A stretch of 64,000 bases of DNA, taken from Blastocladiella emersonii ATCC 22665 (Eukaryota > Fungi > Blastocladiomycota). The stretch spans positions 2,728,001 to 2,792,000 of the forward strand of contig JANHCV010000001.1 of NCBI GenBank assembly GCA_025594325.1, given 5' to 3'. Shown here in pieces: positions 43,993-61,595 of the stretch (position 1 is its first letter; each line of letters starts with the position of its first letter). The notes under the pieces were generated by a model. The model saw only the letters and a program-made list of their open reading frames with translations. It made no database searches and had not been told where the DNA came from. The translations under genes were made by a program, and so were the position numbers.

Positions 43993-44270
43993 TTTGGCGG
44001 GCGGGCGGCGGGGTTGGTTCGTCTGTGTCTACGTTGCAGTGGGTGGTGGAAGTCGAGTCAAGAGTCCAGCTCCTGACTTTTGTGGTGCAGGGAGAGCGAG
44101 GGTCCGGGGTGAAGTGCCGAATCGGCCAGTGCGGGAGGAGGCGAGCGAGACGCGTCGCGCGACGCGTCTCGCGTCACATGATGTCTCCGCCGAAATGTCT
44201 CATGCCTCGCTTTCGCTTCACCTCGTCGCTTCGCCTCACATGCAAGTCCGATGCTGTTAGCGGAACGAGT

Positions 44271-45786
44271 TTATACCTTGGCGAAGAACCGCCGGTCGAG
44301 CACGGCATAGCGGAGCCAGCCGAGACAAACTGCCGCGGCGCCACAGAACGCGACCGCGTAGAGGATGACCCACGAGTAGGTCCCCGCCGGGAGCGCAGGC
44401 GCCGGGTCGGCGGACGTGATGAGCAGCGCGGCGAGTGGTGGGCCGGCGAGGTGGCCCACGGCCTCGGCGCTGTACACGGCCCCGATCGACGCAGCGAGTG
44501 CGCGGACGCCAAACAGCTGTGCTGTGACGCTCGGCATCAGCGACGCGAGGCCGCCGCAGAAAAAACCGAACGCGGCCGCGAACGCGTAGAGGAGGACCAG
44601 GCTGTCGCCGGCGGGAAGCCACAGCGCGAGACACGTTGCCGCCGCGCTGAACGTCGAGAAGAGGTAGAGATTGACATTGCCGAGCCGGTCAGCGGCGCGG
44701 CCCATGGCGATCCGGCCCGTGATGGACGCGACGTTGATGACGGTGAGCATCGAGGTACCCGTTGCGCTCGGGAGGCCTTGCTTGACGCAGTACGCGGGCA
44801 CGAAGTAGTACGGGATGAGGTAGCCAAACGGCGACAGGAACACGCCCAGCATGAGCGCGCCGGCGCCCTTGAGCTCCTTGAACGGAGTGAGGTCGAAGGC
44901 AGACGCGAGCACGTCACGGAGCGACCGTGGCGGGTGCGGCACGACTCGGACACGGAGCATCGCGGCGGCGGCCAACTGAAACGCTCCGGCAACGAAGCCC
45001 GTGATGGCGAGAGTCCAGCGCACGCCGAGTGAGCGGAGCAAGACCTCGGTCCCGTTGGCGAAGGCGAGCCCGCCAACACCGGCTCCAGCGACGGCGATCC
45101 CCGTGACAAAGGAACGGCGCTCGAGCCACCACTGCGCTATGACAGCGACGGCGGGGAAGTACGAGACGGCACAACCCACGCCAACAACGATGCCCTGGGT
45201 GAGAATCAGGTGCCACACCTCGGTTGCGAGGGCGGCCGCGATCAAGTGTCCGCCAACAAGGATCACGGTGCCGATGAGGAGCATGCGGCGGTACCCGTAC
45301 GAGTCGGCGAGGCGGCCAGCGGGGGCGCCGATGAGGTACATGACGCCGAACGATGTGCTACCGACGAGCGCGACCGCGGCTGAGGTTGCGCGGCCGTCGG
45401 CGATCTCGGTCGAGCCGGGAAGGAAACGCTGCCAGATGCCGTACGAGTACTGGATTCCTGCGGAGGGGACGTGGGCACCGAATGTTATGTTGTGCGGTAA
45501 CTGTGCAGCGCTAGGGAGCGGAACGCGCACCGAGAGTGACAAAGTTGACAAGGAAGGAGCTCACGACGACGAGGACGGCGTCGCGACCGCCGTCCGGCGG
45601 CGGGTCCGCGGCTCCGAGTGGAGCGGACTCGTCGCTCTCGAGAGACAGCTTCTTCTGCGGCTGCTCGGCCTCGTCGCCGTGCTCGGCAGCAACGAGCGGC
45701 ACGAGATGGTCGTGGCCGTTCGATGATTGTTCCAGCGGGCGCTGATGGTCATCGAGGTCGCCGGGCGCAGCATCCATTTGATTCAT
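44271..45786 (-). CDS. MFS monocarboxylate-permease-like (MCT/Mch family) transporter; intron 45458-45530
   Basis: PPDGGRDAVLVVVSSFLVNFVTLG|IQYSYG, GRLADSYGYR, LILTQGIVVGVG, QWWLERRSFVTGIAVAGAGVGG, GRIAMGRAADRLG. About 12 TM segments. Confidence 0.9.
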
Positions 45787-46189
45787 CGCAGCTAAGGAGC
45801 TAAGAGCGAGGAGAGAGAGGGCTGCCTCAACCGATGCGCAAGCTGCACCACAGCCAACAGCTGCAAAAATAAGCCTGCTGCAGCACGAGGCTGACGCGTT
45901 GCTGTCGTCTAGTCAGCGATCACGCGTCCCATCACGGACGTGACGCGCCAACTCGACACGAACGATCTGCCGTCACATCGCCCTCACGTAAGCTGAAGAG
46001 CGCTACACCTCGTGCTGGCACTAATGAACGCCAGTTGTAACTGAAGGCATACTGAGAGCAAGTACGACTGGCGGAAAACTTGTGTGACTTGCATCAAGTT
46101 GCTCGTACAGATCGGCCAAGGCCGAGGTCGCGAACCTTCCACACTCTTTCATCGTCGTCACCGCGTCTTCATGAGCCCTCGTTCAGGGC

Positions 46190-46685
46190 ATGCACGCGCC
46201 ACGCGTAGCCGACGACGAGCCGGAGAGGGCCGAGGCGAGACGCGTTGTGCACCTCTCGCACGGACTCATGCCGCAAGCAGGCGCGAATCTCGCAACGGGC
46301 AGCGACCGAGCTGGCGGCAAGCCAAGGTACGCGATCTCATAGGCGAGCGCTAAATCGACGAGCCGTCAGCCGAGCTGCACGGGGCCGATCCATGGGACGA
46401 GCGGGAGCAGGCAGTGACGAGGGAAGCGAAGATGCGTGCTCTCGAGATGAGCTGCACGGTCATTTTACTCGGTGAGCGCCGACAACGACAAAGTTAAGGC
46501 CTGGCCGGTGAGCTCTCAAGTGAAGTAGCTGATCCGTGTCCATGTCGCCACGCGAGCTTCTCGGCTCAGCGGGAGGGGCCGGGCGAGCGCGAGGACGACG
46601 GGCCGAAAGGCGAGTACACAAGGCCGATCCATGAAGTCAGAAGGAACTCGAGCATGAGCATGCAGCGACGGTAGCGAGCACGATC
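46190..46685. repeat. Diverged outer extension of the inverted repeat (pairs with about 58446-58960)
   Basis: Conserved blocks: 46367-46391 vs 58811-58835 (25/25); about 46433-46458 vs 58699-58724 (1 mismatch); about 46190-46217 vs 58932-58959 (1 mismatch). The blocks are separated by indel-rich sequence. Confidence 0.85.
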
Positions 46686-49600
46686 GTGAGTGATGCACGG
46701 CTGTGGCGGCGCCAGCGACGACGATGACGGGGAGAGGACGGGACCCGTTCAGAAAATCACGTCGGCGAAGGGCCCGAGGAACACGTTGTTCGGCGCGCGC
46801 CAAGACTCGGGGAGGGTGTGCGAGATCCGCGAGAGGGACCGACAAGGGCGGAGCGCAGGACGATGACGGAGGTGGTGCCAGCTCCATGTGTCTCCTCCGA
46901 GCAGCGGGCGCGCGAGCGAGCCCGGGCGGGTCCATGTGGGAGAGGCGGCGATCTCCAACAAACCATCGAGCGAGGCCGAACGAGGCGGGTGTGGAAAAAA
47001 AGGCGGAACGAGTGCGGAGCGGTTTGCGGCGCGCCACACGTTTTCTGGGCCGGTCGGCTCGCGGACCTCGCGGCGCGGCGCGGCGGCATGGAACACGTTG
47101 AGGCGCGCCCGTGCGGCGGCGCCATGGTTCGCTGCCGCCGCCGCCGCACTGTGGCGCAATCCTCGCCGCGTGGCGGAAAGCACGCACGCACGCACGCGAA
47201 CGAGGGAAACGTGTTTCTGAAGGGCCAAACGAGCGGGCCGCGCGCCCTCGCAGCCCCGCGTCCACGCCAGCACGCCGGCCCGCACACGGCTTCACGCCAG
47301 AGCCCTCCGGGACGGGACCGCACGCGCCGCGTGTGTGCGGCAGTGCGCATGCTATACGCCACGAGGGGAGCACGCGTGGTCCGCTCGCCCTCGAGCTCGA
47401 TCCTCCGCAGCAAAAGTATAAGTAGAGCGGCCGCCCCCCGCCCATCCCGGCTGCCGAGTCTCCTCGTCCGGATCTACCTCGCTACGCTTCACCCACTAGA
47501 GATCAGCACGGCCATCACCCACTCGCCCGCGCTCTCGCTCGCCCCCGCCCTCCCGTAAGAACCCCACCCGCATCGCGCGCATCACCAACCATGGGCGTCT
47601 ACGACGGTTTCTCCAGCTCGGAGAAGAAGAACCTCACCATCTACATTGGTGGCATCATGTTCTACAAGTTCGCGCTCGAGACGCTGACGGGCTGCATGTC
47701 CAACATCGTGCTCAACCGCTACAAGGTCGCGCCCGCCGCCACCTGGGGCGCCGTCGTGTCGGTCAACTACGCGTGCCAGTCGATTGGCTCGCTGCTCGTG
47801 TCGCCGCTCATCAAGCGCTGGCCCACTTCGCGCGTGCTCGCCACGTCCATCTTCCTGTTCGGCCTCATCGTCGCCATCATCCCGATCCTCGAGGCCGTCA
47901 ACGGCGGCGGCTCGACGGGCCTCGGCGACGAGAAGAACTACAAGAACGGCAGCTGGGACCCCTTCCTCGTCGCCATCCTGTTCCCCATTGTCGGTATCTT
48001 CCACGGCATCATCGAGCTGATCCGCCGCGTCATCCCGCGCGACATTGTCGGCTCGGACCCGTCCAAGCTCAAGCGCATGGACTCGACGGTGCACATCTTC
48101 TACGAGACGGCCGGCACGCTCGGCGCGCTGCTCTCCAAGTACTGGATCGCCTACTTCAACTACGCCTACTCGCTGGCCCTGATCCCGATCGCCTTCACGG
48201 GCGCTGCCATGATCTGGTCGCGCATCAAGGACGCGACGAGCGAGGCGTACGAGGGCCCGTCCAAGACCAAGCGCGTCTCGGGCAACATTGTCTCCGAGTT
48301 CTTCGCCATCGTCAAGGCCTTCTTCTACTCGGTCTGGGTCGGCCTCAAGCTCGTGTGCACCAACCGGTCGCTCGTGTGGCTCATCCCCGCCTACACGCTG
48401 CCCCTCGTCCTGCACCGGTACCTCGAGAACGTGCTGTTCGCGCACTACGCCAATTTCGCGCTGTCGACGGGCTCGTACCAGCAGCTCCTCGTCTCGGGCT
48501 CCAACTTTGGCGAGCTGTGCGGCGCCGCCTTTGTCCTCTTCTTCGCCGACGCCGTCAAGACGCCCATCCCGTGGCTGCGCCTCGACGCCATCATGCTGCT
48601 CGTCGTTTGGATCTTCCCGCTCGCGTCGCCGTTCGAGAACATTGAGGGCTGGGTCTGGTTCCTCGCCGCCATCATGATCCCCGTCTCCATGGGCTGGGCC
48701 GCCGGCGACGTGTCGCTCGTCGCGTACGTGCAGTCGCGCCTCGCCAAGATCGAGGACTCGGAGGCGACCGTGTCGCCGCTCGGCTCGGTCATGTCGTTCC
48801 TCTACGTGCTGTACATTGTCATCTTCGCCGTCGTCAACACGGCCATTGGCAAGGTGCAGGACTCGTTCGTCGCCGACCTGCTCAAGAAGTACGGCTCGGC
48901 CAAGAAGTTCCCCAAGCTCGCCGGCCTCAAGCCGACGCAGGACGCCATGTTCTACACGGCCGGCCTCGTCATGACGTGCTGCGGTGTCGTCGTGCTCCTC
49001 TCGACCTTCATCCCCAAGGGCTCGCTCGCCTTCAACCCCGACAACCTCGACGACGCCGAGGACGACCGTGCCCTCGCCCAGCAGCTCGAGCACGACAAGG
49101 CCTCGGAGACGGCTAAGGACCGCAAGGAGATGATCGAGGCCATGGTCGCGTAAAAGCGGCGCCCGCCTCCTCGCCTCGTTCGCTCGCTCACTTTTTCTCT
49201 CCTCCCTCGGTGTGACCCCCCCCCCTCCCTCATCCTGTCGTGCTTCGTGTGCTTGCTCGCCGCTGCGTTGGCCATCTCCTCGCTCAACGCAGCCTGCGGC
49301 GGCGGCGCGTGCGCGGCATCCACTCTCCTCTCCTCCCTGCTCAACTTTTTTGGTGTGATCGGCGGCAGTGCGCCTGGATCGCAAAGTGATATATAGACCG
49401 TTTTTGTGCTACTACTCTACACTTGTCTTCCGTGTGCTTGTGCCTCAACATCTGCTCTCGCGACGCGAGCATTGAAGTTGTTGCTCGCGAGCGCTCAGCG
49501 CGCCGCACCGCGTGTTCCGTTGAGCGAGCAAGAATATCGCCAAAGAAGCTCGGGATACGCCATGTACGATAGACGCAATGCGTGCGGTGCAAAGGGGATC

Positions 49601-50294
49601 AGCCGACAAGGGCGGTGGCGGCCACCGAGGGCGTGGGCCGCGATGCCCGCGCGGTCACGCCGACATGAGCGACGCGCGTCAAGACAGACGCGAGCGCTGA
49701 TCCCTGCAGCTCGCAGCACGTGACACGACTTAGACGTCTAAATTCACGATGCATCAGAATATTTTTTTCTGAGCATCGGATCGTCATCAGGGACCCTCAG
49801 GGACCACGTACATGCAAAAGTCTCCGAGTCGAAGTGTCGGGGTGTCGAGAAGTCGTCCGGCCGTGCAAAGTTGAAAAAAACTTTTGGTTTTGGTCGTTCG
49901 GACGATCTCGCGCCAATCCTGCACGTAAGACTTGGCTTCTTGAATCACACCATGTCGCCGATCCGGCCGAAACTTTGCGTATGAGCATCATATGTGTCTG
50001 AAGCTATTTTAGCGTCGAGAAAGTAATTTTGCAAATTTATGTGAGCCCGCTGCAGCGATGGGTCAACTTAGCTCACGTATTCGAGCGGCCATCGTGCGCG
50101 TCGGCGGCCATCACGCGCGGCCATCACGCGTGTGTTCGCTCGCTCGCGTTCTTGCTTCCCCGTTACCTTGCGCATCTCATCGCTCATGAACAGCGAGACA
50201 CTGGAAGCCGAATGATGCAGGAGAACGCTCGGCCACACCCCAAGTGTAACAACTTCACGCCCGAACGGCGCGCTCACCCGCGTGATGGATCGGC
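46686..50294 (+). repeat. Left arm of a large inverted repeat (3,609 bp)
   Basis: Reverse complement of 54837-58445. Paired coordinates sum to 105131 at both ends and at the ORF ends, so there is no net indel. Mirrored ORF translations are identical in all frames of the track, and spot checks, including a C10 homopolymer, match. Confidence 0.95.
47591..49153 (+). CDS. MFS-fold transporter, copy 1 (520 aa, intronless)
   Basis: About 12 hydrophobic segments. ELIRRVIPRDIVGSDPSKLKRMDSTVHIFYETAG resembles the DHA3-type loop motif. Strong host codon bias. Substrate unknown. Confidence 0.85.
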   Translation: MGVYDGFSSSEKKNLTIYIGGIMFYKFALETLTGCMSNIVLNRYKVAPAATWGAVVSVNYACQSIGSLLVSPLIKRWPTSRVLATSIFLFGLIVAIIPILEAVNGGGSTGLGDEKNYKNGSWDPFLVAILFPIVGIFHGIIELIRRVIPRDIVGSDPSKLKRMDSTVHIFYETAGTLGALLSKYWIAYFNYAYSLALIPIAFTGAAMIWSRIKDATSEAYEGPSKTKRVSGNIVSEFFAIVKAFFYSVWVGLKLVCTNRSLVWLIPAYTLPLVLHRYLENVLFAHYANFALSTGSYQQLLVSGSNFGELCGAAFVLFFADAVKTPIPWLRLDAIMLLVVWIFPLASPFENIEGWVWFLAAIMIPVSMGWAAGDVSLVAYVQSRLAKIEDSEATVSPLGSVMSFLYVLYIVIFAVVNTAIGKVQDSFVADLLKKYGSAKKFPKLAGLKPTQDAMFYTAGLVMTCCGVVVLLSTFIPKGSLAFNPDNLDDAEDDRALAQQLEHDKASETAKDRKEMIEAMVA

Positions 50295-50930
50295 ACGGTT
50301 GAACGCGTCGTGGGCGGCGTGTGCCGCATTCTCTCTCCTCTCGTTCCCGAACACGCTCACGCACACGCCATGAAGCGCGACCTGCGCCTCCCAAACAGTT
50401 GCTGCATTATGGCGCAACAGGTTGCACGGACTCGACCCGGAACGCGACGCGGCCCGAACGCGACGCGGCGCTTCCCTCTCTGCGGTCTCGACCGACGCCA
50501 CGCCGTCGTTGTCGGCTCCGTCGGCGCCGGCTTGGCCTCGGCCTCGGCCGTCTTCGTCGGCGCCGTGTCGGCCGTGTCCATGTCCCAACGGTGCTGCGGC
50601 ATGGAAGATGGTTTCCGGCATTGAGCATCGCATGAACGATACGCAATAATCGCCTTGCCGCACCGATCCTGCTGCGACCGTGCCCGCGCCCCTCGGTCCC
50701 GGTTTGGTTCGGTCGTGCTGCCGTTGCTGTCACTCGACCATTTCTCTCGGACGCGCTCTACGTCTGACGCGACCAGCAGCGCCGAGGCCGTCATTCCCCG
50801 CTCTTCTCTCGCGGGCAGAGGCGGTTGACGCACACCTGATCCGCCGGAGCTTGATTCGCGCCGTCTGAACCGTTCGTACTCGCGAGTCCGATCCGATCGA
50901 TCACGGCCCCAGTATGAGAGCACCCCCTCA

Positions 50931-50975
50931 CTTCACTTCACTTCACTTCACTTCACTTCACTTCACTTCACTTCA
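50931..50975. repeat. Microsatellite (CTTCA)9
   Basis: Nine perfect pentamer copies. Confidence 0.95.
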
Positions 50976-51203
50976 CGCCGCGGTCCTGCACTGCGATTGC
51001 ACGACGACAACGCCGAGCAGCGGGACTGAGACGAGAGCCGTCAGCTCCGAGATCGTCCTCGCTCAGAGCTCAGAGCTCAGAATTTGCAATCGTAGCTCAG
51101 AAAACCCTGCATCCGTATATGTACGACTCTGGCTGCATGAACAAAAACCATCCATCGGGCGGGCGTAGAGGTGGTGAAGAGCAGGCAGCACGCGCGTGTC
51201 CCG

Positions 51204-51655
51204 CTCCATTCACCCGCGCCCTGAGCCCCCAAGGGGACCGAACCAGAAGCGCGGGGGAGAAGACACGCGTCGACGGGCAGCCTCGCGTCCGTCACGATCG
51301 CACTTTCGCTCTCCATTCACCCGCGTCCCGAACCCCCATGGGGGTCTCGCCGGGAAAAACGCGGGGGAGAGGTACTCGGCGGCCTCGCACACGGCTCGGG
51401 GGGTCTCCATTCACCCGCGTCTCGAGCCCCCATGGGGGCCGAACCGAGAACGCGGGGGAGAGCCCGTTCGCGGCCTCGCTCGCTCGCGCGCGTCTTCGTC
51501 TCCGTTCACCCACGTCCCGAGCCCCCATGGGGACCGATCCGGAGACGTGGGGGAGAGTACTCGGCGGCGGCGGCGGCAGCCTCGTGTGCGCTTTCGTCCC
51601 CATATACCCGCGCCCCGAACCCCCATGGGGGTCTAGCCGGGAGCGCGGGGGAGAG
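51204..51655. repeat. Array of five ~57-63-bp imperfect palindromic (hairpin) repeats, period about 94-107 bp
   Basis: Units at about 51204-51260, 51309-51371, 51405-51462, 51500-51557 and 51597-51655. Consensus CTCC-ATTCA-CCCGCGY-CYCG-A-RCCCCC-AT-GGGG(GY)-n5-CGRG-A-RCGCGGG-GGAGAG. Confidence 0.9.
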
Positions 51656-51771
51656 TACTCGGCGGCGGTATCGTGCGGGGGGCGCCCGCCCGTCGGCTCG
51701 TGGCCGTGGCCGTGGCCGCGGTCGCGCTGCTGCTCCTGCTGCCACTCCACTTGAACTGCGACGACGTGTCG

Positions 51772-51843
51772 CCGCGTACGACTTGCGACCGCGACCCCGC
51801 GTACGACTTGCGACCGCGTAACCGCGTACGACTTGCGACCGCG
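51772..51843. repeat. 3 x 22-bp direct repeat CCGCGTACGACTTGCGACCGCG with 3-bp linkers (25-bp period)
   Basis: Exact copies at 51772, 51797 and 51822; linkers ACC and TAA. Confidence 0.9.
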
Positions 51844-51899
51844 AGCGGCTGCTGCGGCACGGCCGAGTTGAACTTGACCGTCCGTTGGTCGAGGCCGGG

Positions 51900-52530
51900 C
51901 GCCGAGCACCGTGTTCTTGAGGATCAGGATGAGGACAATCGTGACGCGGATGGCGATGCCGGTCTTGCGCGACAGCGACAGCGACAGCGACCCGTTGCAG
52001 CGGCCGATGATCGAGTTGAACGAGCGGCCACCTTGGCCTGGCCTTGCCGTCGAGCTTGATCACGGCGAGCGACATGGTCTTGGTGGCCGACTGCTTGGTG
52101 GTGGTGGTGAACGTCGCGCCGTACGGTAGTCGTTGCGCGATGACAATCTACGCCGCAGGCAGGGGATCTTGGTGGTTAGCGTGCGGAGCGAGCGCGAGCG
52201 GATCAAGAAGCGAGCTGTGACCGTACCTGGCAGCAGCGATCGATGCACCACACCACGCCACGCCACGCCACGCCACGCCAGGCCAGCGAGAACCGGGACT
52301 TGACGATCTTGGCAACGGCGGCAGCGACGCGTCGGCCGTGTGCTTGATGATCGTGACGGCCGATGAGCGACGGCCGAACGGGACAGGAGCGGGCGGAACT
52401 CGGGGGCGCGCGCTCGTCAGGCCGCGACAGCTGCAGCGGGACCTCGAGTCGCCGCCGTGCCGTGGCTGCCGATGATCTCGAGGACGGGACGAGCGCCGAG
52501 GCAGAAGGTGGTCGATCGCGTTGATGTCAT
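51900..52530 (-). pseudogene. Possible decayed spliced gene fragment
   Basis: Intron-like AG|GTACGG...GCTAAC...CGTAG at about 52148-52226. It is followed by coding-like IVIAQRLPYGATFTTTTKQSATKTMSLAVIKLDGK and, after a frame change, RKTGIAIRVTIVLILILKN. No intact ORF. Confidence 0.3.
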
Positions 52531-53442
52531 GGTGAGAAGTCGAGACCGTCCAGCCCGGGAGGTGAGGTAGTAGTGAAGTGCGAGGGAGGAGGGCGAGTGA
52601 GGATCAGTTGAGCGAGGAGCCCGAGCGCATTTATGGGCTCCGCAGGCGTGCAGCCGCCGGCACGCGCGCGAAACCAGCCACGAGCGGGGGCAGCGGCAGC
52701 GGCAGCAGCGGCGCGACACGGTGCACGGTGGCAGTCCGAGCGAGCGAATGAGCGAACAAACGAACGAGAAACTCGGCGCGAAACCGCCGAGATACTGAAC
52801 AGGCGCGATATTGTCTCGCACCACGTCGCACGCGCGCACCATCGGTCCGTCGTAGCTGACCAAGGCGGCGCGCTCGCCATCGCACCAAGACAAGGAAATC
52901 CTCGATCGGTGCCGCCCGTGCGAGACGTTGCCAAGAGCCTGTTCCGTCGGAAGCGCGGCGCGGCGCGGCGCGGAGGCCGTGCACCAGCGTAGAGGTGCGC
53001 CGCTCTAGCTCACGATGAGTCAAACTGCGTCCCACTTTGGAACCGGAACTGGAACTCGAGCGGGCACGGGGGGCACGGGGGCACGGGGGCACGGGGGGAG
53101 ACGCGACGCGCGAGACGTGGCGCGACGCGTGTCAGCCATCAGCTGACTTTCACGTGGGAGGTGCGAGACATGATCACGATCGCGCGTTTGGGACAAGTAA
53201 ATATCAACGAGACTTGCCGCACGACAACCGACACTAGGTGAAACACGTGCTGAATGAACATGAAATGAGCTCGGCCTCGCGCAGGTCAACATTCAGACGA
53301 GATGTTCAAGGTTGTACAGGCAGATTCGACGCAACACGTCGAACGTAGTGTATTATGAAATAGGGGAGGGGAACGCACACGCCGGCACATCACACGCAAT
53401 ATGAGATAGGAAAGTGAAGAAAGAGGACGAGAGGGGAAAAGC

Positions 53443-54300
53443 TTAGATGCCGCCAAAGATCTTGGTGAGGATGGCCGCAAGGCGAAGGCCGCCCTTGAGG
53501 ACCTGGGCGTTGACAATGTCCTTGTTGGCCTTGTAGTACGCGCCGTTGGTCTGGTCGCCGGCCTGGAGGCCGTCGCGGTAGACGGCCGAGCACACGAGCG
53601 CCTCGCTGTTCTTGGCCCACGACTCGGCGCACGCGGTGACCTTGGCCTCGTTGGTGGGGTCAACCGATGCGGCGCACTCGGCCATGGTGTCAGCGGGCGC
53701 CGGCTTGGTGAGGAGGGCATCGACCCACTGCTCGGCCGAGCCGCCGAAATCGTCGGACTGGACCTGGCGGATGAGCGTCGAGTCCCAGAGGCTGTGCAGG
53801 TTGACGGTCTTCTTGGCGAACTTGACCTTAATGTTGTTGGAGCCGCGCTCGTAGCCCGACGCGTGGAGCGGCTGCGCAATGTCGCCGACATAGTGCACGA
53901 GGTAGGCGAGGGCCTGACCGGCCTCCTTGCCCGACTTGTTCGCGCTGAGGATCTTGGCCGAGGCGGCGATCGCGGTGACAACGCAGCCGGTGTCCTCGCA
54001 GCTGGTCGGCAGGGCGGCGGTGCGGCCGCAGTCACCGGGGGAGTCCGGGTACTGGATGTAGTGCTGCGGTGCGGTCTTAGGGCTCTTGTGGCGGTCGGGC
54101 CACGTCGACGCGTCCTCAATGGACTTGACGTCGGGGCTCGACTTGATCAGGGCGTCGACGCCGGCCTTGGCGCGCGGCGTCAGGTTGGCGTAGGCGATCG
54201 ACGCGACGGCCTCATGGCCCTCAGAGCCCCAAGCGTTGGCCGAGTTGGCGAGCGCGAGGAGAGCGAAGACGGTGATGAGGAGAGTCGAAGGGTTGGTCAT
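53443..54300 (-). CDS. Secreted S1/P1 nuclease (single-strand-specific nuclease/3'-nucleotidase), 285 aa, intronless
   Basis: Signal peptide, then mature N-terminus WGSEGHEAVA. Zinc-ligand motifs WPD, HYI, LVHYVGDIAQPLH and NLHSLWD all present. Confidence 0.95.
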   Translation of the reverse strand: MTNPSTLLITVFALLALANSANAWGSEGHEAVASIAYANLTPRAKAGVDALIKSSPDVKSIEDASTWPDRHKSPKTAPQHYIQYPDSPGDCGRTAALPTSCEDTGCVVTAIAASAKILSANKSGKEAGQALAYLVHYVGDIAQPLHASGYERGSNNIKVKFAKKTVNLHSLWDSTLIRQVQSDDFGGSAEQWVDALLTKPAPADTMAECAASVDPTNEAKVTACAESWAKNSEALVCSAVYRDGLQAGDQTNGAYYKANKDIVNAQVLKGGLRLAAILTKIFGGI

Positions 54301-54366
54301 GGCCGACGTCTACGGAGGATCTATGGTGATGAGGGACACAGTTGAGGCGCGGGGGACTCGATCCTC

Positions 54367-54372
54367 TTTATA
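54367..54372 (-). promoter_or_regulatory. TATA-like box (TATAAA) upstream of the S1/P1 nuclease
   Basis: TATAAAG on the minus strand about 70 bp upstream of the ATG at 54300, in otherwise GC-rich DNA. Confidence 0.4.
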
Positions 54373-54836
54373 CGGGCGGGTTCAGGGCCCGCCGCCGCTG
54401 CGGCGTGTTCCCGGGTCCTCAGCTTGCTTGCTCGAACGAAGCCGCGTCGGAAAGAACCGGCTGCAGTCCGATCGAGTCCGTGTTGCTCGCGTGCAAGATT
54501 TACGTCTGAAACACGGCGTAGCGTTTGCCGAGCCGAAGGCACGGACACGCGCACGACCTGGTGCCGCAACCTCCACTTTCAACTGGTTTGCATGCGGATG
54601 TGTTTCACTTTTGCTCCGCTCGTCACGAATGTCAAGCAGTCACGCGTTTTCTCGACGCGTGCCGCCTCGCGGACGAGTCCAAGCGACACAAAGACCGAGA
54701 AGTCACCCAGACCGCGAAGCTGCATCAAACGCATCCACGGGGCGATGATTCGCTCATCGCACTGAGTTGACCACGAGGCACGAGGCACGACGCACGACGC
54801 ACGAGTCATGAGCTGCGTACGATACGTTTCCACCAC

Positions 54837-57800
54837 GCCGATCCATCACGCGGGTGAGCGCGCCGTTCGGGCGTGAAGTTGTTACACTTGGGGTGTGGCC
54901 GAGCGTTCTCCTGCATCATTCGGCTTCCAGTGTCTCGCTGTTCATGAGCGATGAGATGCGCAAGGTAACGGGGAAGCAAGAACGCGAGCGAGCGAACACA
55001 CGCGTGATGGCCGCGCGTGATGGCCGCCGACGCGCACGATGGCCGCTCGAATACGTGAGCTAAGTTGACCCATCGCTGCAGCGGGCTCACATAAATTTGC
55101 AAAATTACTTTCTCGACGCTAAAATAGCTTCAGACACATATGATGCTCATACGCAAAGTTTCGGCCGGATCGGCGACATGGTGTGATTCAAGAAGCCAAG
55201 TCTTACGTGCAGGATTGGCGCGAGATCGTCCGAACGACCAAAACCAAAAGTTTTTTTCAACTTTGCACGGCCGGACGACTTCTCGACACCCCGACACTTC
55301 GACTCGGAGACTTTTGCATGTACGTGGTCCCTGAGGGTCCCTGATGACGATCCGATGCTCAGAAAAAAATATTCTGATGCATCGTGAATTTAGACGTCTA
55401 AGTCGTGTCACGTGCTGCGAGCTGCAGGGATCAGCGCTCGCGTCTGTCTTGACGCGCGTCGCTCATGTCGGCGTGACCGCGCGGGCATCGCGGCCCACGC
55501 CCTCGGTGGCCGCCACCGCCCTTGTCGGCTGATCCCCTTTGCACCGCACGCATTGCGTCTATCGTACATGGCGTATCCCGAGCTTCTTTGGCGATATTCT
55601 TGCTCGCTCAACGGAACACGCGGTGCGGCGCGCTGAGCGCTCGCGAGCAACAACTTCAATGCTCGCGTCGCGAGAGCAGATGTTGAGGCACAAGCACACG
55701 GAAGACAAGTGTAGAGTAGTAGCACAAAAACGGTCTATATATCACTTTGCGATCCAGGCGCACTGCCGCCGATCACACCAAAAAAGTTGAGCAGGGAGGA
55801 GAGGAGAGTGGATGCCGCGCACGCGCCGCCGCCGCAGGCTGCGTTGAGCGAGGAGATGGCCAACGCAGCGGCGAGCAAGCACACGAAGCACGACAGGATG
55901 AGGGAGGGGGGGGGGTCACACCGAGGGAGGAGAGAAAAAGTGAGCGAGCGAACGAGGCGAGGAGGCGGGCGCCGCTTTTACGCGACCATGGCCTCGATCA
56001 TCTCCTTGCGGTCCTTAGCCGTCTCCGAGGCCTTGTCGTGCTCGAGCTGCTGGGCGAGGGCACGGTCGTCCTCGGCGTCGTCGAGGTTGTCGGGGTTGAA
56101 GGCGAGCGAGCCCTTGGGGATGAAGGTCGAGAGGAGCACGACGACACCGCAGCACGTCATGACGAGGCCGGCCGTGTAGAACATGGCGTCCTGCGTCGGC
56201 TTGAGGCCGGCGAGCTTGGGGAACTTCTTGGCCGAGCCGTACTTCTTGAGCAGGTCGGCGACGAACGAGTCCTGCACCTTGCCAATGGCCGTGTTGACGA
56301 CGGCGAAGATGACAATGTACAGCACGTAGAGGAACGACATGACCGAGCCGAGCGGCGACACGGTCGCCTCCGAGTCCTCGATCTTGGCGAGGCGCGACTG
56401 CACGTACGCGACGAGCGACACGTCGCCGGCGGCCCAGCCCATGGAGACGGGGATCATGATGGCGGCGAGGAACCAGACCCAGCCCTCAATGTTCTCGAAC
56501 GGCGACGCGAGCGGGAAGATCCAAACGACGAGCAGCATGATGGCGTCGAGGCGCAGCCACGGGATGGGCGTCTTGACGGCGTCGGCGAAGAAGAGGACAA
56601 AGGCGGCGCCGCACAGCTCGCCAAAGTTGGAGCCCGAGACGAGGAGCTGCTGGTACGAGCCCGTCGACAGCGCGAAATTGGCGTAGTGCGCGAACAGCAC
56701 GTTCTCGAGGTACCGGTGCAGGACGAGGGGCAGCGTGTAGGCGGGGATGAGCCACACGAGCGACCGGTTGGTGCACACGAGCTTGAGGCCGACCCAGACC
56801 GAGTAGAAGAAGGCCTTGACGATGGCGAAGAACTCGGAGACAATGTTGCCCGAGACGCGCTTGGTCTTGGACGGGCCCTCGTACGCCTCGCTCGTCGCGT
56901 CCTTGATGCGCGACCAGATCATGGCAGCGCCCGTGAAGGCGATCGGGATCAGGGCCAGCGAGTAGGCGTAGTTGAAGTAGGCGATCCAGTACTTGGAGAG
57001 CAGCGCGCCGAGCGTGCCGGCCGTCTCGTAGAAGATGTGCACCGTCGAGTCCATGCGCTTGAGCTTGGACGGGTCCGAGCCGACAATGTCGCGCGGGATG
57101 ACGCGGCGGATCAGCTCGATGATGCCGTGGAAGATACCGACAATGGGGAACAGGATGGCGACGAGGAAGGGGTCCCAGCTGCCGTTCTTGTAGTTCTTCT
57201 CGTCGCCGAGGCCCGTCGAGCCGCCGCCGTTGACGGCCTCGAGGATCGGGATGATGGCGACGATGAGGCCGAACAGGAAGATGGACGTGGCGAGCACGCG
57301 CGAAGTGGGCCAGCGCTTGATGAGCGGCGACACGAGCAGCGAGCCAATCGACTGGCACGCGTAGTTGACCGACACGACGGCGCCCCAGGTGGCGGCGGGC
57401 GCGACCTTGTAGCGGTTGAGCACGATGTTGGACATGCAGCCCGTCAGCGTCTCGAGCGCGAACTTGTAGAACATGATGCCACCAATGTAGATGGTGAGGT
57501 TCTTCTTCTCCGAGCTGGAGAAACCGTCGTAGACGCCCATGGTTGGTGATGCGCGCGATGCGGGTGGGGTTCTTACGGGAGGGCGGGGGCGAGCGAGAGC
57601 GCGGGCGAGTGGGTGATGGCCGTGCTGATCTCTAGTGGGTGAAGCGTAGCGAGGTAGATCCGGACGAGGAGACTCGGCAGCCGGGATGGGCGGGGGGCGG
57701 CCGCTCTACTTATACTTTTGCTGCGGAGGATCGAGCTCGAGGGCGAGCGGACCACGCGTGCTCCCCTCGTGGCGTATAGCATGCGCACTGCCGCACACAC

Positions 57801-58445
57801 GCGGCGCGTGCGGTCCCGTCCCGGAGGGCTCTGGCGTGAAGCCGTGTGCGGGCCGGCGTGCTGGCGTGGACGCGGGGCTGCGAGGGCGCGCGGCCCGCTC
57901 GTTTGGCCCTTCAGAAACACGTTTCCCTCGTTCGCGTGCGTGCGTGCGTGCTTTCCGCCACGCGGCGAGGATTGCGCCACAGTGCGGCGGCGGCGGCAGC
58001 GAACCATGGCGCCGCCGCACGGGCGCGCCTCAACGTGTTCCATGCCGCCGCGCCGCGCCGCGAGGTCCGCGAGCCGACCGGCCCAGAAAACGTGTGGCGC
58101 GCCGCAAACCGCTCCGCACTCGTTCCGCCTTTTTTTCCACACCCGCCTCGTTCGGCCTCGCTCGATGGTTTGTTGGAGATCGCCGCCTCTCCCACATGGA
58201 CCCGCCCGGGCTCGCTCGCGCGCCCGCTGCTCGGAGGAGACACATGGAGCTGGCACCACCTCCGTCATCGTCCTGCGCTCCGCCCTTGTCGGTCCCTCTC
58301 GCGGATCTCGCACACCCTCCCCGAGTCTTGGCGCGCGCCGAACAACGTGTTCCTCGGGCCCTTCGCCGACGTGATTTTCTGAACGGGTCCCGTCCTCTCC
58401 CCGTCATCGTCGTCGCTGGCGCCGCCACAGCCGTGCATCACTCAC
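54837..58445 (-). repeat. Right arm of the large inverted repeat (3,609 bp)
   Basis: Reverse complement of 46686-50294. Identity stops after ...ATGGATCGGC (inner end) and ...GCATCACTCAC (outer end). Confidence 0.95.
55978..57540 (-). CDS. MFS-fold transporter, copy 2 (translation identical to copy 1)
   Basis: The ORF track gives the same 520-aa protein on the minus strand. Confidence 0.85.
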   Translation of the reverse strand: MGVYDGFSSSEKKNLTIYIGGIMFYKFALETLTGCMSNIVLNRYKVAPAATWGAVVSVNYACQSIGSLLVSPLIKRWPTSRVLATSIFLFGLIVAIIPILEAVNGGGSTGLGDEKNYKNGSWDPFLVAILFPIVGIFHGIIELIRRVIPRDIVGSDPSKLKRMDSTVHIFYETAGTLGALLSKYWIAYFNYAYSLALIPIAFTGAAMIWSRIKDATSEAYEGPSKTKRVSGNIVSEFFAIVKAFFYSVWVGLKLVCTNRSLVWLIPAYTLPLVLHRYLENVLFAHYANFALSTGSYQQLLVSGSNFGELCGAAFVLFFADAVKTPIPWLRLDAIMLLVVWIFPLASPFENIEGWVWFLAAIMIPVSMGWAAGDVSLVAYVQSRLAKIEDSEATVSPLGSVMSFLYVLYIVIFAVVNTAIGKVQDSFVADLLKKYGSAKKFPKLAGLKPTQDAMFYTAGLVMTCCGVVVLLSTFIPKGSLAFNPDNLDDAEDDRALAQQLEHDKASETAKDRKEMIEAMVA

Positions 58446-59736
58446 TTACGATCGCCGTACTCGCTGCTGCCGTCGCCCCGCCTCCTCGTCTTTGCCTGCT
58501 CTCGCTCGAGCTTCCGCCCGCCCCGTGGATCGGCCTTGCGCACCGCTTCTCGGCCTTACCTCGCGCTCGCTCGCCCCTCGCGTCGTCGAGCCAGCGGAAC
58601 CGAGGCGCCGCGCAACAACTTGGATCGGCGACTTTGCTTGAGAGGTCACCGGCTGCGCCTCCGCTTTGACGACGTCTGCGTTCACTGAGTGATGTGGACG
58701 TGCAGCTCATCTTGAGAGCACGCACCTGTGTCCCTCGTTGCGAGTCCCTGCTGCTGACGCTTCGGTTCTTCGTCGCTGCCTGCTCTCGCCCATGTTTCCG
58801 CCTGCCTCAAGGATCGGCCCCGTGCAGCTCGGCTGTCGGCCAGTCGTCTTCGCGCTCGTCCTGACGCGGGACGAGTCTGCCATGCGAGAGGTGAGTAGCT
58901 CGCATTGTCTCGGCCTTCACCAGTACCAGTCCGTCGTCGGCTACGCGCGGCGCGTGCATACCCCGCGCGAACACTCGGGGACTTCGCAGCGACGTCGACG
59001 AGGCAATGAGAGAGGTTCACGTTGTCGGCGTGGGCCGATCCTTACGAGCAACTCGACGCGCCGGATGCTGACGACTATGTCCTCCCTCCAGGTCCGCGCA
59101 TCGTCGTTGGAAACGGTCCAAGGTCGCTACTCGGTTCTCAAAGGGGCCGGCAACTTTCTCTCACCCGCTGTTCCGCCGTGAGTGAAGCGGATGGTTCCCA
59201 ACCTCTCGCTGTTCGTGCGTGCTGTGCTGCTGGCCCGCGAGCCTCGCTGCCCTTTCGCGTTGCCCTCTGCGCCAAACGCAAGAACTGTACATCGTAAGCC
59301 TTGTGCAGGCTAGCGATCATACGTAATGCACCTGTACTACTTGTGGCTTCCTCACAACTTACGCGCGGTAAACGAGGCAACGTCGCTCAAGTCGGCATCA
59401 CTGACCGCCTTTGTCGACAACATGAGCATGTCAAGTCCTTTTGTCAAGCGTCGGCTCCCTGGCTACCCTTGGGTGCCTTCGCAAACATCTCCAGCCGATG
59501 AGTCTGCGACGCGCAGGCGCGTGACAGCTCCGCGAGACAAAAGTGCGAGACGCGTTCGCCATCGCACGTGAGTGGCGCTCACAAGACGAGCGACGCGTCA
59601 CGTCAGCTGCGCCGCCTCGGCCCCGGTGTTGTGCCGCGCAGGGTTAAAACCGTCGTCGCAGCCCGCCGCGGCTCTCGCTCCCGCTCTCACCTGCCCCCTC
59701 CTTCCCATCATCTTGCACACATTCATCCATCGCACC

Positions 59737-61595
59737 ATGCAACCTCGCCCACTGCTCCGCCGCCTCGCGGTCCTGGCCGTCCTCCTTGTCAGCGCCGTCG
59801 CCACGGCCTCCTCCTCGCGCGTGTCCGACTCGGAGGTGATCCTCGGCCCAAGCTCGGCGTACTCGGACGGCCTCGACACGCTACGCGTCGGCTACTCGCT
59901 CGACATCGACGGCCGCACCGCCCTCCCGCACCTCTTCCCCTCGCCGCATGGCGTGCATGCTGCCGGCGCCGACGCGAGCAAGCCGATCCTCATCCGCCAC
60001 CCGACGTGGGACCACCTCGTGCTCAAGTACTTCGAGCGCGACGGTGACGATGCCGCCGAGGCGCGCGACGCGTGGCACGCCGCCGTGACCGAGTCCCTCC
60101 GCCGCGCCGTGGCGGACCGTTCGCCAGCCGGCGTCGACCTCGACCACGCGGCGACGCAGTTTGTGCTCCACTCGTCGGGCCGCCGCTCGGCCCCCATGTC
60201 CGAGCTGTACACGTCGCCGAACCGCGGCATCGTGGTCGTCGCCGTCGACCCCAAGTGGCGCATCCCGCTTCCCCCGGCTGCGGCCGCCCAGTCCATCTCG
60301 CCCGACGTCGCCGTGTCGGACATTCTCGTCGACGCGCTCCCCGGCAACACGCAGGTCCACCGCCTCCCGCTGCCGCCCGCTCGCGACACGGCCGCGGGGT
60401 CCATGACAGTGGATGCGGTGCTCGACGAGCACGTCCGCATCGAGCAGGCCCGCGAGCGCGGCGTCGCGCGTGCCATGGAGGTGCTCGCTGACCCGAAGCT
60501 GCAGCGCAAGCCGACCAAGCCGGCACCCGGCGACGAGCGGATCCACGCGCTGCTCGCCAACATCACGACGGACGAGCTACGCGCCGACGCGACGTTTCTG
60601 ACGGGCGAGAACCCCGACTCGCCGCTCACGACGCGCCACTCGCTGTCCAAGGGCCACCTGACGGCCGCCGAGTGGATCAAGAAGCGGTTCACGGCGTACG
60701 GGTGCGACTCGGTCGAGCTGGTCTCGTTCCGCGAGGGCTACGGGCCCAACGTTGTCTGGTACGCTTTCTCTCTATTCTTTGGTCGTGTCCGACACGTCAC
60801 TGACACTCCGATTCCTCGCACCTAGCACGATCGAGGGCGCTGATCTGGCCGACGAGCAGGTGGTCCTCGGCGCGCACCTCGACGACCGCGGCAGCCTGTT
60901 TGTGCCCTTCTCGCGCGCTCCCGGTGCCAACGACGACGGGTACGATCTCGAGTGTGTGTGCGAGCAGCGAGTGCCGCGCCGTCGCAAGCCACGACGTGTG
61001 CGGCATAGCCGTCGTCGCAGTAGTGTTGAACACGACCAGTTCTAACTCCCATCTCTTCCGTCATTCATTCAGGAGTGGAACGTCGATGCTGCTCGCCTCA
61101 CTGCGCCACCTCAAGGAGTCGGGGATCCGCCTGCGCCGCACGCTCAAGGTCGTCAACTTCTGCGGCGAGGAGCAGGGCCTGATCGGGTCCAAGGCGTACG
61201 CGCGGTCGGCCCGCGCGCGCGGCGACCCGATCGTGTTCATGCTACAGGGCGACATGCTCGCGTACCGGCACCCGGGCGAGCCGCTGCAGTGCGCGCTCCC
61301 CGCGGCGCACGCGTCGCCTGAGGCGTCGCTCGTGGTGCGCAAGGTGGCCGAGGTGTACACGCCCGAGGTGGTCGTCGGCACGACGTCGGCGTGCTGCAGC
61401 GACCACCAGTCGTTCTACGAGCAGGGCTTCATCAGCACGCAGATCTTCGAGCGCAACGGGCCCATCAAGGACCCCATGTACCACAACCGCGGCGACACGG
61501 TCGGCCGCATCGGCTACGACTTTGAGCAGCTGCAGGCGCTCACGCGGATCGCGCTCGCGACCACGGTCACGGTGGCCGAGATCGCCGAGGCCTAA
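59737..61595 (+). CDS. Secreted M28-family aminopeptidase with a long prodomain; introns about 60760-60824 and 60941-61072
   Basis: Signal peptide. Motifs GAHLDD, APGANDDG|SG, GEEQGLIGS, DMLAY, SDHQSF and YH. Confidence 0.9.

Follow-up and report, generated by a model that had tools for sequence, protein, structure and literature searches.

[quoted passage not shown] The two arms, 46686–50294 and 54837–58445, are exact reverse complements over 3,609 bp, with 0 mismatches and 0 indels, whereas the mirrored DNA that borders them on the outside is strongly diverged. The elements of the locus are as follows:

46091–46685 (no strand): left outer flank, an old stretch of the inverted duplication that has diverged; non-coding; internal repeat, ~240–284 bp
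46686–50294 (+): left arm, exact reverse complement of 54837–58445; two genomic copies
46686–47590 (+): upstream region of the left MFS gene, presumed promoter plus 5′ UTR; non-coding, GC3 periodicity absent
47591–49153 (+): predicted MFS transporter gene, left copy; single exon, 520 aa, GC3 0.93–0.98
49650–50085 (+): dispersed, AT-richer, MITE-like non-coding repeat, left copy; core 49702–49945
50295–54836 (no strand): spacer, 4,542 bp, without mirror symmetry
51204–51668 (+): five tandem units of ~95–100 bp each; direct-repeat families D1 and D2, seen also in a self-BLAST of the window
53443–54300 (−): predicted S1/P1 nuclease gene; intact, single exon, 285 aa, GC3 0.87–0.97
54837–58445 (−): right arm, identical to the left arm; mirrored MITE-like repeat at ~55046–55481
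55978–57540 (−): predicted MFS transporter gene, right copy; CDS with 0 nucleotide differences from the left copy, GC3 periodicity
58446–59059 (no strand): right outer flank, diverged mirror of 46091–46685 by alignment to the left flank

Alignment of the arms gives 100% identity over 3,609 bp, with limits at 46686/50294 and 54837/58445, and base-level comparison thus bears out a sequence-only reading of this DNA that had given the same arm coordinates, no net indel, and a 4,542-bp spacer (the arm length of 3,618 nt returned by the repeat tool is a 9-bp overrun with 3 mismatches; 3,609 bp and a 4,542-bp spacer are correct). The composition proposed for each arm in that reading, about 0.9 kb of promoter, an identical MFS gene, and about 1.1 kb of 3′ region, agrees with what was measured: 905 bp of non-coding upstream DNA, a 1,563-bp MFS ORF, and 1,141 bp downstream. 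The non-coding share of each arm amounts to 2,046 bp and is without any arm-to-arm difference. A whole-genome search with one arm (E = 0) recovers two full-length copies in the 32.65-Mb genome, both at the palindrome. Inverted, kilobase-sized arms of >99% identity and an asymmetric spacer, which are among the traits of the palindrome class, are both found here. In a GC3 periodicity scan of 45.5–59.5 kb, coding DNA is recognized in three places only: the two MFS genes and a single nuclease gene. A gene spanning the outer limit of the arms was considered and rejected: the ORFs at 46516–47445 (−) and 57686–58669 (+) have neither a Pfam match nor GC3 periodicity and are regarded as spurious high-GC ORFs, and a Pfam match is likewise absent from the ORF at 46818–47558 (+). 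No homology was found between the upstream region (46686–47590) and the upstream regions of paralogs.

The two MFS genes are intact and converge on the spacer. Their ORF matches the Pfam profile MFS_1 at E = 3.9e-8 (33.0 bits, slightly below the cut-off of 33.4), and the encoded protein has 446 full-length homologs, mainly fungal, most of which bear PF07690 or are named MFS (the best is from Blastocladiella emersonii); among named Atlas clusters, the closest is an MFS domain protein (score, 0.99). From these matches, the arm gene is predicted to encode an MFS transporter; PDB, NCBIfam, and Atlas yielded no assignment of subfamily or substrate. The MFS paralogs form a B. emersonii-specific clade, with a dS of 0.28 to 0.34 between the arm gene and its paralogs, a dS of 0.28 to 0.40 over the MFS paralogs, and a dN/dS of 0.20 to 0.33 among paralogs, the last indicative of purifying selection and, together with the intact ORFs, in keeping with two functional copies.

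No inverted self-homology was found in the spacer, nor any arm homology running inward. Its gene is predicted to encode an S1/P1 nuclease, as it matches Pfam PF02265 at E = 5.9e-59 (200 bits) over profile positions 1 to 257 of 258, and an 84% paralog lies at C1:1928810–1929944. The spacer segment 51204–53190 has paralogs at C16:1.365 Mb and C16:1.718 Mb, and the tandem units within it have homologs of 82 to 83% on C16. The MITE-like repeat carried by each arm (~0.4 kb, with a GC content of 0.51 versus about 0.63 to 0.70 around it) has 33 genome matches (20 on contig C1) at 73 to 87% identity; its conserved unit was set by alignment of 23 copies, and Rfam and tRNA searches returned no match to it. 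The repeat occurs at several duplication limits and may help to seed or delimit palindromes.

The age of the duplication can be read from the outer flanks. Alignment of the left flank with the reverse complement of the right flank gives 71.0% identity across 528 aligned columns and K = 0.366; gaps take up 145 columns and represent 12 indel events, and an exact 25-mer block is kept between the two flanks. The sequence-only reading had described about 500 bp of outer homology interrupted by indels; the homology, the indels, and the 25/25 block all stand, and the length proves somewhat greater: mirrored homology reaches ~600 bp beyond the arms before it stops, and the genes that follow on the two sides are different. 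Coding periodicity is absent from the left flank. In a whole-genome search, the only match to the flank sequence is its own mirror, which rules out a dispersed repeat that seeded the duplication; since the flanks are absent elsewhere in the genome, they are part of the same duplication and not a chance repeat. Identity within the flanks is 68% adjoining the core and 72 to 78% farther out, with no rise toward the core, and the 40 bp next to the core limit already contain indels of 7 bp and 19 bp. The left-hand MFS gene at 44271–45551 and the right-hand ORF at 59572–60825 stand at nearly mirrored positions. Extension of the mirror symmetry to these neighbor genes was examined and discarded: the tblastx similarity is compositional noise, and the gene on the right is a peptidase M28 gene.

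At the rate of divergence seen in the flanks, the 2,046 non-coding bases of an arm would hold several hundred differences. The flank K of ~0.37 is close to the dS of the MFS paralogs, themselves a B. emersonii-specific clade, and the core has 0 differences; this calls for a duplication that is old on the scale of the MFS gene family and for a core that was homogenized later. The duplication is thus older than the identity of its arms implies, as judged by comparison within one genome, and the earlier proposal of an old inverted duplication with a homogenized core gains support from locus-specific flanks of 71% identity against a 3,609-bp core without a difference.

Similar structures occur elsewhere in the B. 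emersonii genome, in which near-identical arms were confirmed for five more large inverted repeats. Four of the five were aligned over whole arms and display, in ~25 kb, 2 substitutions and 2 repeat-length indels; the fifth, viewed over a 1,749-bp stretch only, is 100% identical there. Their arms measure 3.9 to 9 kb (one pair seen over at least 1.75 kb), with interiors of >99.9% identity and spacers of 1 to 59 kb. One of them, at C1:4.074–4.095 Mb, contains the sister paralog of the arm MFS gene, again as convergent genes and with the same MITE-like repeat ~0.5 kb downstream; alignment of this palindrome with the present one is confined to the CDS and the MITE-like repeat, with no upstream or spacer DNA in common. 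Inverted pairs at 2.19 Mb, considered as a decayed palindrome, turned out to be two short pairs, distinct from each other and separated by non-homologous DNA, and did not enter the evidence. Among the five palindromes aligned in full, the present one alone has a core bordered by diverged homology (~600 bp); long diverged flanks were detected in none of the four others tested, and because they are absent there, near-identity in those four could reflect recent origin. We advance tentatively, and at less than even odds, the broader proposal that B. emersonii keeps gene-bearing autosomal palindromes throughout its genome, often around transporters, identical by continual conversion; the present locus would then be the one to prove their age. 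The genome paper (PMC9730499) contains no description of a palindrome-rich genome outside sex chromosomes.

For the present locus, the proposed course begins long ago with the inverted duplication of 4.2 kb or more, which would have put the MFS gene, along with its upstream and downstream DNA, across a 4.5-kb segment. Non-crossover homologous recombination between the arms would have repeatedly overwritten one with the other, giving an identical inner 3.6 kb, and the outermost ~600 bp would have escaped conversion, probably after indels made a heterology barrier, and then diverged freely. The net result would be two identical, intact, convergent transporter genes, with doubled dosage and concerted evolution. 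The architecture of the locus, its single occurrence, the integrity of its genes, and the age difference between core and flanks are directly shown. Conversion as the homogenizing process, its recurrence, and the heterology barrier are what we infer from this one genome; the flat identity of the flanks and the indels near the core limit fit a fixed barrier.

A single recent long-tract event would be indistinguishable in this picture from recurrent conversion: one repair, by break-induced replication or by template switching primed within the old homology, might have recopied the 3.6 kb, with no continuing upkeep of identity. The sharpness of both limits, the lack of an identity gradient in the flank, and arms with zero differences are all compatible with such an event, as is the lack of an evident signal of GC-biased conversion (MITE-like copies inside palindromes are not GC-richer than those outside, and there is just one observation the other way, a GC content of 0.70 in the arm upstream region versus 0.63 to 0.655 in the flanks). 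We nevertheless consider a one-time repair unlikely, given that drift of the kind seen in the flanks (71%, with many indels) leaves, the coding part excepted, little unbroken homology for a 3.6-kb exchange and that arms are essentially identical in all five other large inverted repeats examined, which is unexpected from rare events of random age. An origin of the pattern in assembly or polishing, either through a false inverted join or through slightly differing copies equalized by consensus or Pilon, would draw on the facts that there is one assembly only and that it was haplotig-purged and polished with 65-bp Illumina reads. The assembly was built with LJA from HiFi reads (mean, 10.5 kb; ~186×) (PMC9730499), and the 3.6-kb arms are far below this mean read size; in addition, the locus is internal to a 5.14-Mb contig, its 4.5-kb spacer is unique and holds an intact gene, and unrelated single-copy genes lie on both sides (another MFS gene at 44271–45551 and the peptidase M28 gene at 59572–61595). 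With arms shorter than the reads, unrelated flanking genes, and an internal contig position, an artifact is therefore very improbable. None of the signs of a fold-back (a missing spacer, a contig end, or outward continuation of the mirror) is present, a fold-back chimera could not produce diverged mirror flanks, and polishing could mask a few SNPs at most, which would leave the conclusion unchanged.

The bracketing of a gene-bearing middle by inverted arms also recalls a mobile or programmed element, such as a long-TIR or foldback transposon or an invertible expression cassette flipped by a recombinase, and a 10-mer, GCCGATCCAT, is located at the spacer end of each arm and twice, in inverse orientation, in the outer flank, while missing from 134 kb of other B. 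emersonii DNA. As a TIR or recombination site, this 10-mer was rejected: similarity stops at 10 bp, its score does not exceed that of shuffled sequence, and any inverted repeat automatically carries such a match at its two inner ends. We regard it as a minor oddity. Transposase, integrase, and recombinase domains are absent from the tested ORFs of 44–62 kb (Pfam searches of ORFs in and around the arms found no transposase or other mobility domain), no TIR is found at the core ends, and there is no TSD at either the core ends or the homology ends; the Pfam searches and a reading of the end sequences thus agree with the earlier remark that the ends have no TSD or transposase. Moreover, arms and flanks occur at no other locus in the genome, and since each MFS gene lies complete within one arm together with its 905-bp upstream region, a flip of the spacer would leave the wiring of both genes unchanged. 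An element of this kind is scarcely credible here, and we retain recurrent arm-to-arm conversion of an old inverted duplication as the preferred reading.

The closest architectural counterparts are the palindromes of sex chromosomes. In those of the human and ape Y (P1–P8) and of the primate and mouse X, arm identity is explained by intrachromosomal gene conversion (Rozen et al. 2003, via PMC5490193; PMC8600007; PMC8327919; bioRxiv 10.1101/800185). The resemblance drawn in the sequence-only reading holds for architecture: inverted arms of >99% identity, a unique spacer, intact protein-coding genes, and an identity much younger than the duplication. Differences lie in size (arms of ~10 kb to 1.45 Mb versus 3.6 kb), in gene content (a testis gene family versus a nutrient-type transporter), in the basis for aging (cross-species comparison versus diverged flanks within one genome), and in the host, which here is a fungus without an identified sex chromosome. 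The zoosporic fungus B. emersonii is not known to have a sexual cycle. Autosomal, gene-bearing palindromic collinear blocks in a lineage without known sex are described, in PMC5490193, for Folsomia candida and, as cited there, for the bdelloid Adineta vaga; relative to the blocks in that account, the arms in B. emersonii are identical and require homogenization. Among fungi, Candida albicans has long inverted repeats whose role in inversions, CNV, and LOH was demonstrated experimentally (Todd et al. 2019, eLife, PMC6591007). Like the present arms, these are ORF-containing inverted repeats of a few kilobases and high identity, kilobases apart on a fungal chromosome (e.g., Repeat 124, at ~3.2 kb, 99.5% identical and ~11.3 kb apart); their median identity is 94.3%, against 100% for the arms in B. 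emersonii, and their rearrangements are demonstrated (PMC6591007), whereas the two spacer isomers of the B. emersonii palindrome are a prediction of the sequence-only reading.

Taken alone, the palindrome is an ordinary example of a known architecture. Inverted gene copies that are nearly identical may have arisen very recently, or they may be old and under continual correction, and in most palindromes the two cases look alike; here, the decayed flanks act as a built-in clock, and the main value of the palindrome lies in dating the process. As the duplication dates back roughly as far as the divergence of the gene family, the identity of its arms must have been maintained or restored by recombination. 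The locus thereby supports reading the other identical-arm palindromes of B. emersonii as conversion-maintained, and it offers a small, PCR-sized site at which mitotic gene conversion and spacer inversion could be measured in an early-diverging fungal model.

The two arms of the palindrome (46686-50294 and 54837-58445) are mirror copies over 3,609 bp, with 0 mismatches and 0 indels in base-by-base comparison, around a spacer of 4,542 bp, so that the arm limits, lack of a net indel, and spacer length claimed by the sequence-only reading are matched exactly. Its proposal to align the arms was carried out: identity is complete over the 3,609 bp, and the limits are located. A repeat finder returned a single dominant inverted pair within 44000-61000, at slightly extended coordinates (46686-50303 / 54828-58445) whose terminal 9 bp include 3 mismatches. 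Queried against all 21 contigs of the assembly (32.65 Mb, in which the window occupies C1:2728001-2792000), the arm has just these two full-length copies, and self-comparison of the 64-kb window yields no further large repeats. On the inner side of this identical core, mirror homology ends at once.

A scan of GC by codon position, in which true genes (GC3 of 0.87-0.98) stand sharply apart from spurious high-GC ORFs, finds only three clearly coding stretches within 45.5-59.5 kb; these are listed with the outer neighbors and with the copies of a short dispersed repeat.

Features of the palindrome and its surroundings (window positions)
44271-45551, minus strand: MFS_1 transporter of another subfamily, outside left, unrelated to the right neighbor
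47591-49153, plus strand: MFS gene, left copy (GC3 scan)
49650-50085: short repeat in the left arm, noncoding, MITE-like, unclassified
53443-54300, minus strand: S1/P1 nuclease gene in the spacer (GC3 scan; PF02265 full-length, 200 bits)
55046-55481: short repeat in the right arm, noncoding, MITE-like, unclassified
55978-57540, minus strand: MFS gene, right mirror copy (GC3 scan)
59572-61595, plus strand: peptidase M28 gene, outside right, unrelated to the left neighbor

Each arm comprises 905 bp of noncoding upstream DNA, a 1,563-bp CDS, and 1,141 bp downstream (about 0.9 kb, an identical MFS gene, and about 1.1 kb had been claimed), and both MFS genes point toward the spacer. The gene is an intact single exon encoding 520 aa; its match to Pfam MFS_1 is marginal (E = 3.9e-8; 33.0 bits versus a cut-off of 33.4), and its full-length homologs among fungal MFS proteins number in the hundreds, the best being annotated Blastocladiella emersonii ATCC 22665 proteins. 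Searches of PDB, NCBIfam, and Atlas gave no assignable subfamily or substrate. Two ORFs crossing the outer limits (46516-47445, minus strand; 57686-58669, plus strand) lack domains and coding periodicity and are rejected as genes. The outer neighbor genes lie at almost mirrored distances from the palindrome, yet are unrelated.

A paralog (84%) of the spacer nuclease lies at C1:1.929 Mb. The spacer also contains a (TCACT)n tract, five ~97-bp tandem units (51204-51668), and a 25-bp triple repeat; the tandem units and the DNA after them (51204-53190) have 68-83% homologs at C16:1364710-1366406 and C16:1718112-1719779, and ORFs in this stretch show no Pfam domain and no clear coding periodicity. 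In one gene model, from Mortierella polycephala, a homolog of the transporter is annotated as fused to a nucleoside phosphorylase domain (PF01048); together with the placement of a nuclease between twin transporters, this hints weakly at a connection to nucleoside salvage.

Outside the core, mirror homology reaches ~46091 on the left and ~59059 on the right, past which identity drops to 27%, the random level. The sequence-only reading had described about 500 bp of such homology interrupted by indels; the homology and the indels are borne out, and the measured extent is ~600 bp. From its onset to the core, the global alignment of these flanks spans 673 columns, of which 375 match, 153 mismatch, and 145 hold gaps from 12 indel events, for an identity of 71.0% and a Jukes-Cantor K of 0.366. 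Identity does not increase toward the core (68% in the adjoining block, 72-78% farther out), and the 40 bp next to the core limit include indels of 7 and 19 bp. In a whole-genome search, the flank matches nothing but its mirror; being unique to the locus, it is no chance-placed transposon copy but belongs to the ancient inverted duplication that produced the arms.

Were the arms as old as their flanks, several hundred differences would be expected in their 2,046 noncoding bases alone. With K = 0.366 and 12 indel events in the flanks against 0 differences in the arms, the earlier proposal of an old inverted duplication with a homogenized core is upheld, and homogenization is the only reasonable reading of these sequences. 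Continual arm-to-arm conversion bounded by a stable outer barrier would keep the core identical. A single late event could also have recopied the 3.6-kb core, but we favor continual conversion with a stable barrier, since sequences diverged like the flanks leave little unbroken homology for an exchange of that length.

The MFS subfamily offers a calibration for this age. It occupies three loci in the genome: the window palindrome (locus A, two identical copies), locus B (C1:4.074/4.094 Mb, two CDS-identical copies), and locus C (C18:0.579 Mb, single). Synonymous divergence is 0.34 (A-B), 0.28 (A-C), and 0.40 (B-C), and dN/dS ratios of 0.20-0.33 indicate that purifying selection acts on all copies, which are thus functional genes. 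When homologs from B. britannica, Allomyces, Catenaria, and chytrids are included in a tree, the three group as a clade specific to B. emersonii (support 82/91), within which A and B are sisters (92/92); noncoding DNA of A aligns with that of B or C only at the dispersed repeat. The flank K of 0.37 is thus of the same order as paralog divergence, while the arms show zero.

Could the palindrome be an artefact? The assembly, published as 21 contigs (PMC9730499), comes from PacBio HiFi data (mean read length 10.5 kb, 6.37 Gb) assembled with LJA, then passed through purge_dups and polished by Pilon with 65-bp Illumina reads. The arm is about one-third of a mean HiFi read at ~186x coverage, the palindrome sits within a 5.1-Mb contig rather than at its end, and the unique spacer bears an intact gene. 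Mirror homology stops 600 bp beyond the arms, with different genes on each side thereafter, and diverged mirror flanks would not arise from a fold-back chimera or haplotype mis-join. At most a few SNPs could be hidden by polishing. From methods and structure, we infer that the palindrome is not an artefact. Nor, on the features tested, does it fit a transposon, being a single locus with no mobility gene and no TSD (the sequence-only reading had likewise seen no TSD or transposase at its ends), or an invertible switch, having no recombinase gene. The 10-mer GCCGATCCAT occurs at the spacer end of each arm (50285-50294, 54837-54846) and again in the outer flanks, twice each and inverted (46384 and 46623 on the left; as variants, 58521 and 58805 on the right). 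A window should contain it 0.13 times by chance, it is absent from 134 kb sampled elsewhere in the genome, and the sites share no similarity past 10 bp.

The short repeat also occurs at other loci. Window positions 49702-50090 match ~30 other places, many as inverted pairs. Across 23 aligned copies, the unit is ~0.4 kb, noncoding, and AT-richer than its surroundings (GC 0.51); its core is conserved, as are its ends, which contain GACTTAG; the window copy has no strong terminal inverted repeats and no Rfam or tRNA match. At least 33 copies exist, 20 of the 33 on C1 and 14 in seven inverted pairs. For many copies, which fall into families, homology extends 0.6-1.9 kb into the flanks, so that copies are not independent and their association with palindromes is partly inherited via segmental duplication. 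The repeat may seed duplications or may simply accompany them. Examination of five regions with inverted pairs of the repeat revealed further palindromes.

Other inverted pairs in the genome
C1:4074304-4083341 / 4094535-4085523: palindrome B, holding MFS paralog B (convergent); arms 9.0 kb, spacer 2.2 kb
C1:1349241-1353133 / 1358143-1354251: palindrome; arms 3.9 kb, spacer 1.1 kb
C1:1199062-1204838 / 1213394-1207618: palindrome; arms 5.8 kb, 100% identical, spacer 2.8 kb
C15, up to 1834411 / from 1843827 (region C15:1828001-1850236): palindrome; arms at least 6.4 kb, spacer 9.4 kb
C18:989616-1052656: sixth pair; arms at least 1.75 kb, 100% identical, 59.5 kb apart

With edge over-extension set aside, arm interiors differ by 1 substitution and 2 repeat-length indels in palindrome B, by 1 substitution in the C1:1349241 palindrome, and by 0 in the C1:1199062 and C15 palindromes. 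The C18 pair starts within ~50 bp of the short repeat, which marks the limit of near-identical duplication at C18:0.99/1.05 Mb, as it does at C1:4076360, the exact start of a duplicated segment forming the inner 7 kb of the locus B arms. A third copy of that segment runs on from C1:4044751 (99.8-100% identical across 1.9 kb or more), another, at 88-93%, is found at C1:3.4994 Mb, and at locus B the repeat lies ~0.46 kb downstream of the MFS gene. The window palindrome has its copy not at the inner limit of the arm but 205 bp inside it. Near C1:2.19 Mb, two inverted pairs (95%, 87%) were considered as one decayed palindrome and proved to be separate short repeats. Arms of the 1.35-Mb palindrome hold a 36-bp tandem-repeat tract with relatives at C16:2.447 Mb and C18:0.99 Mb.

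The proposed likeness to sex-chromosome palindromes holds for architecture and inferred mechanism (PMC8600007, PMC8327919, bioRxiv 10.1101/800185). Among fungi, both are matched by the ORF-bearing long inverted repeats of Candida albicans (for example, ~3.2 kb, 99.5% identity, 11.3 kb apart), for which inversions, CNV, and LOH have been demonstrated as consequences (PMC6591007). [quoted passage not shown] The text of the B. emersonii genome paper names tandem duplication and contains no mention of inverted duplications, palindromes, or gene conversion (PMC9730499). The window palindrome is a further example of a known architecture and one of a class in its genome. Long diverged flanks are absent from all four other palindromes tested, making the window locus the informative one, of particular value because the duplication can be dated from its flanks.
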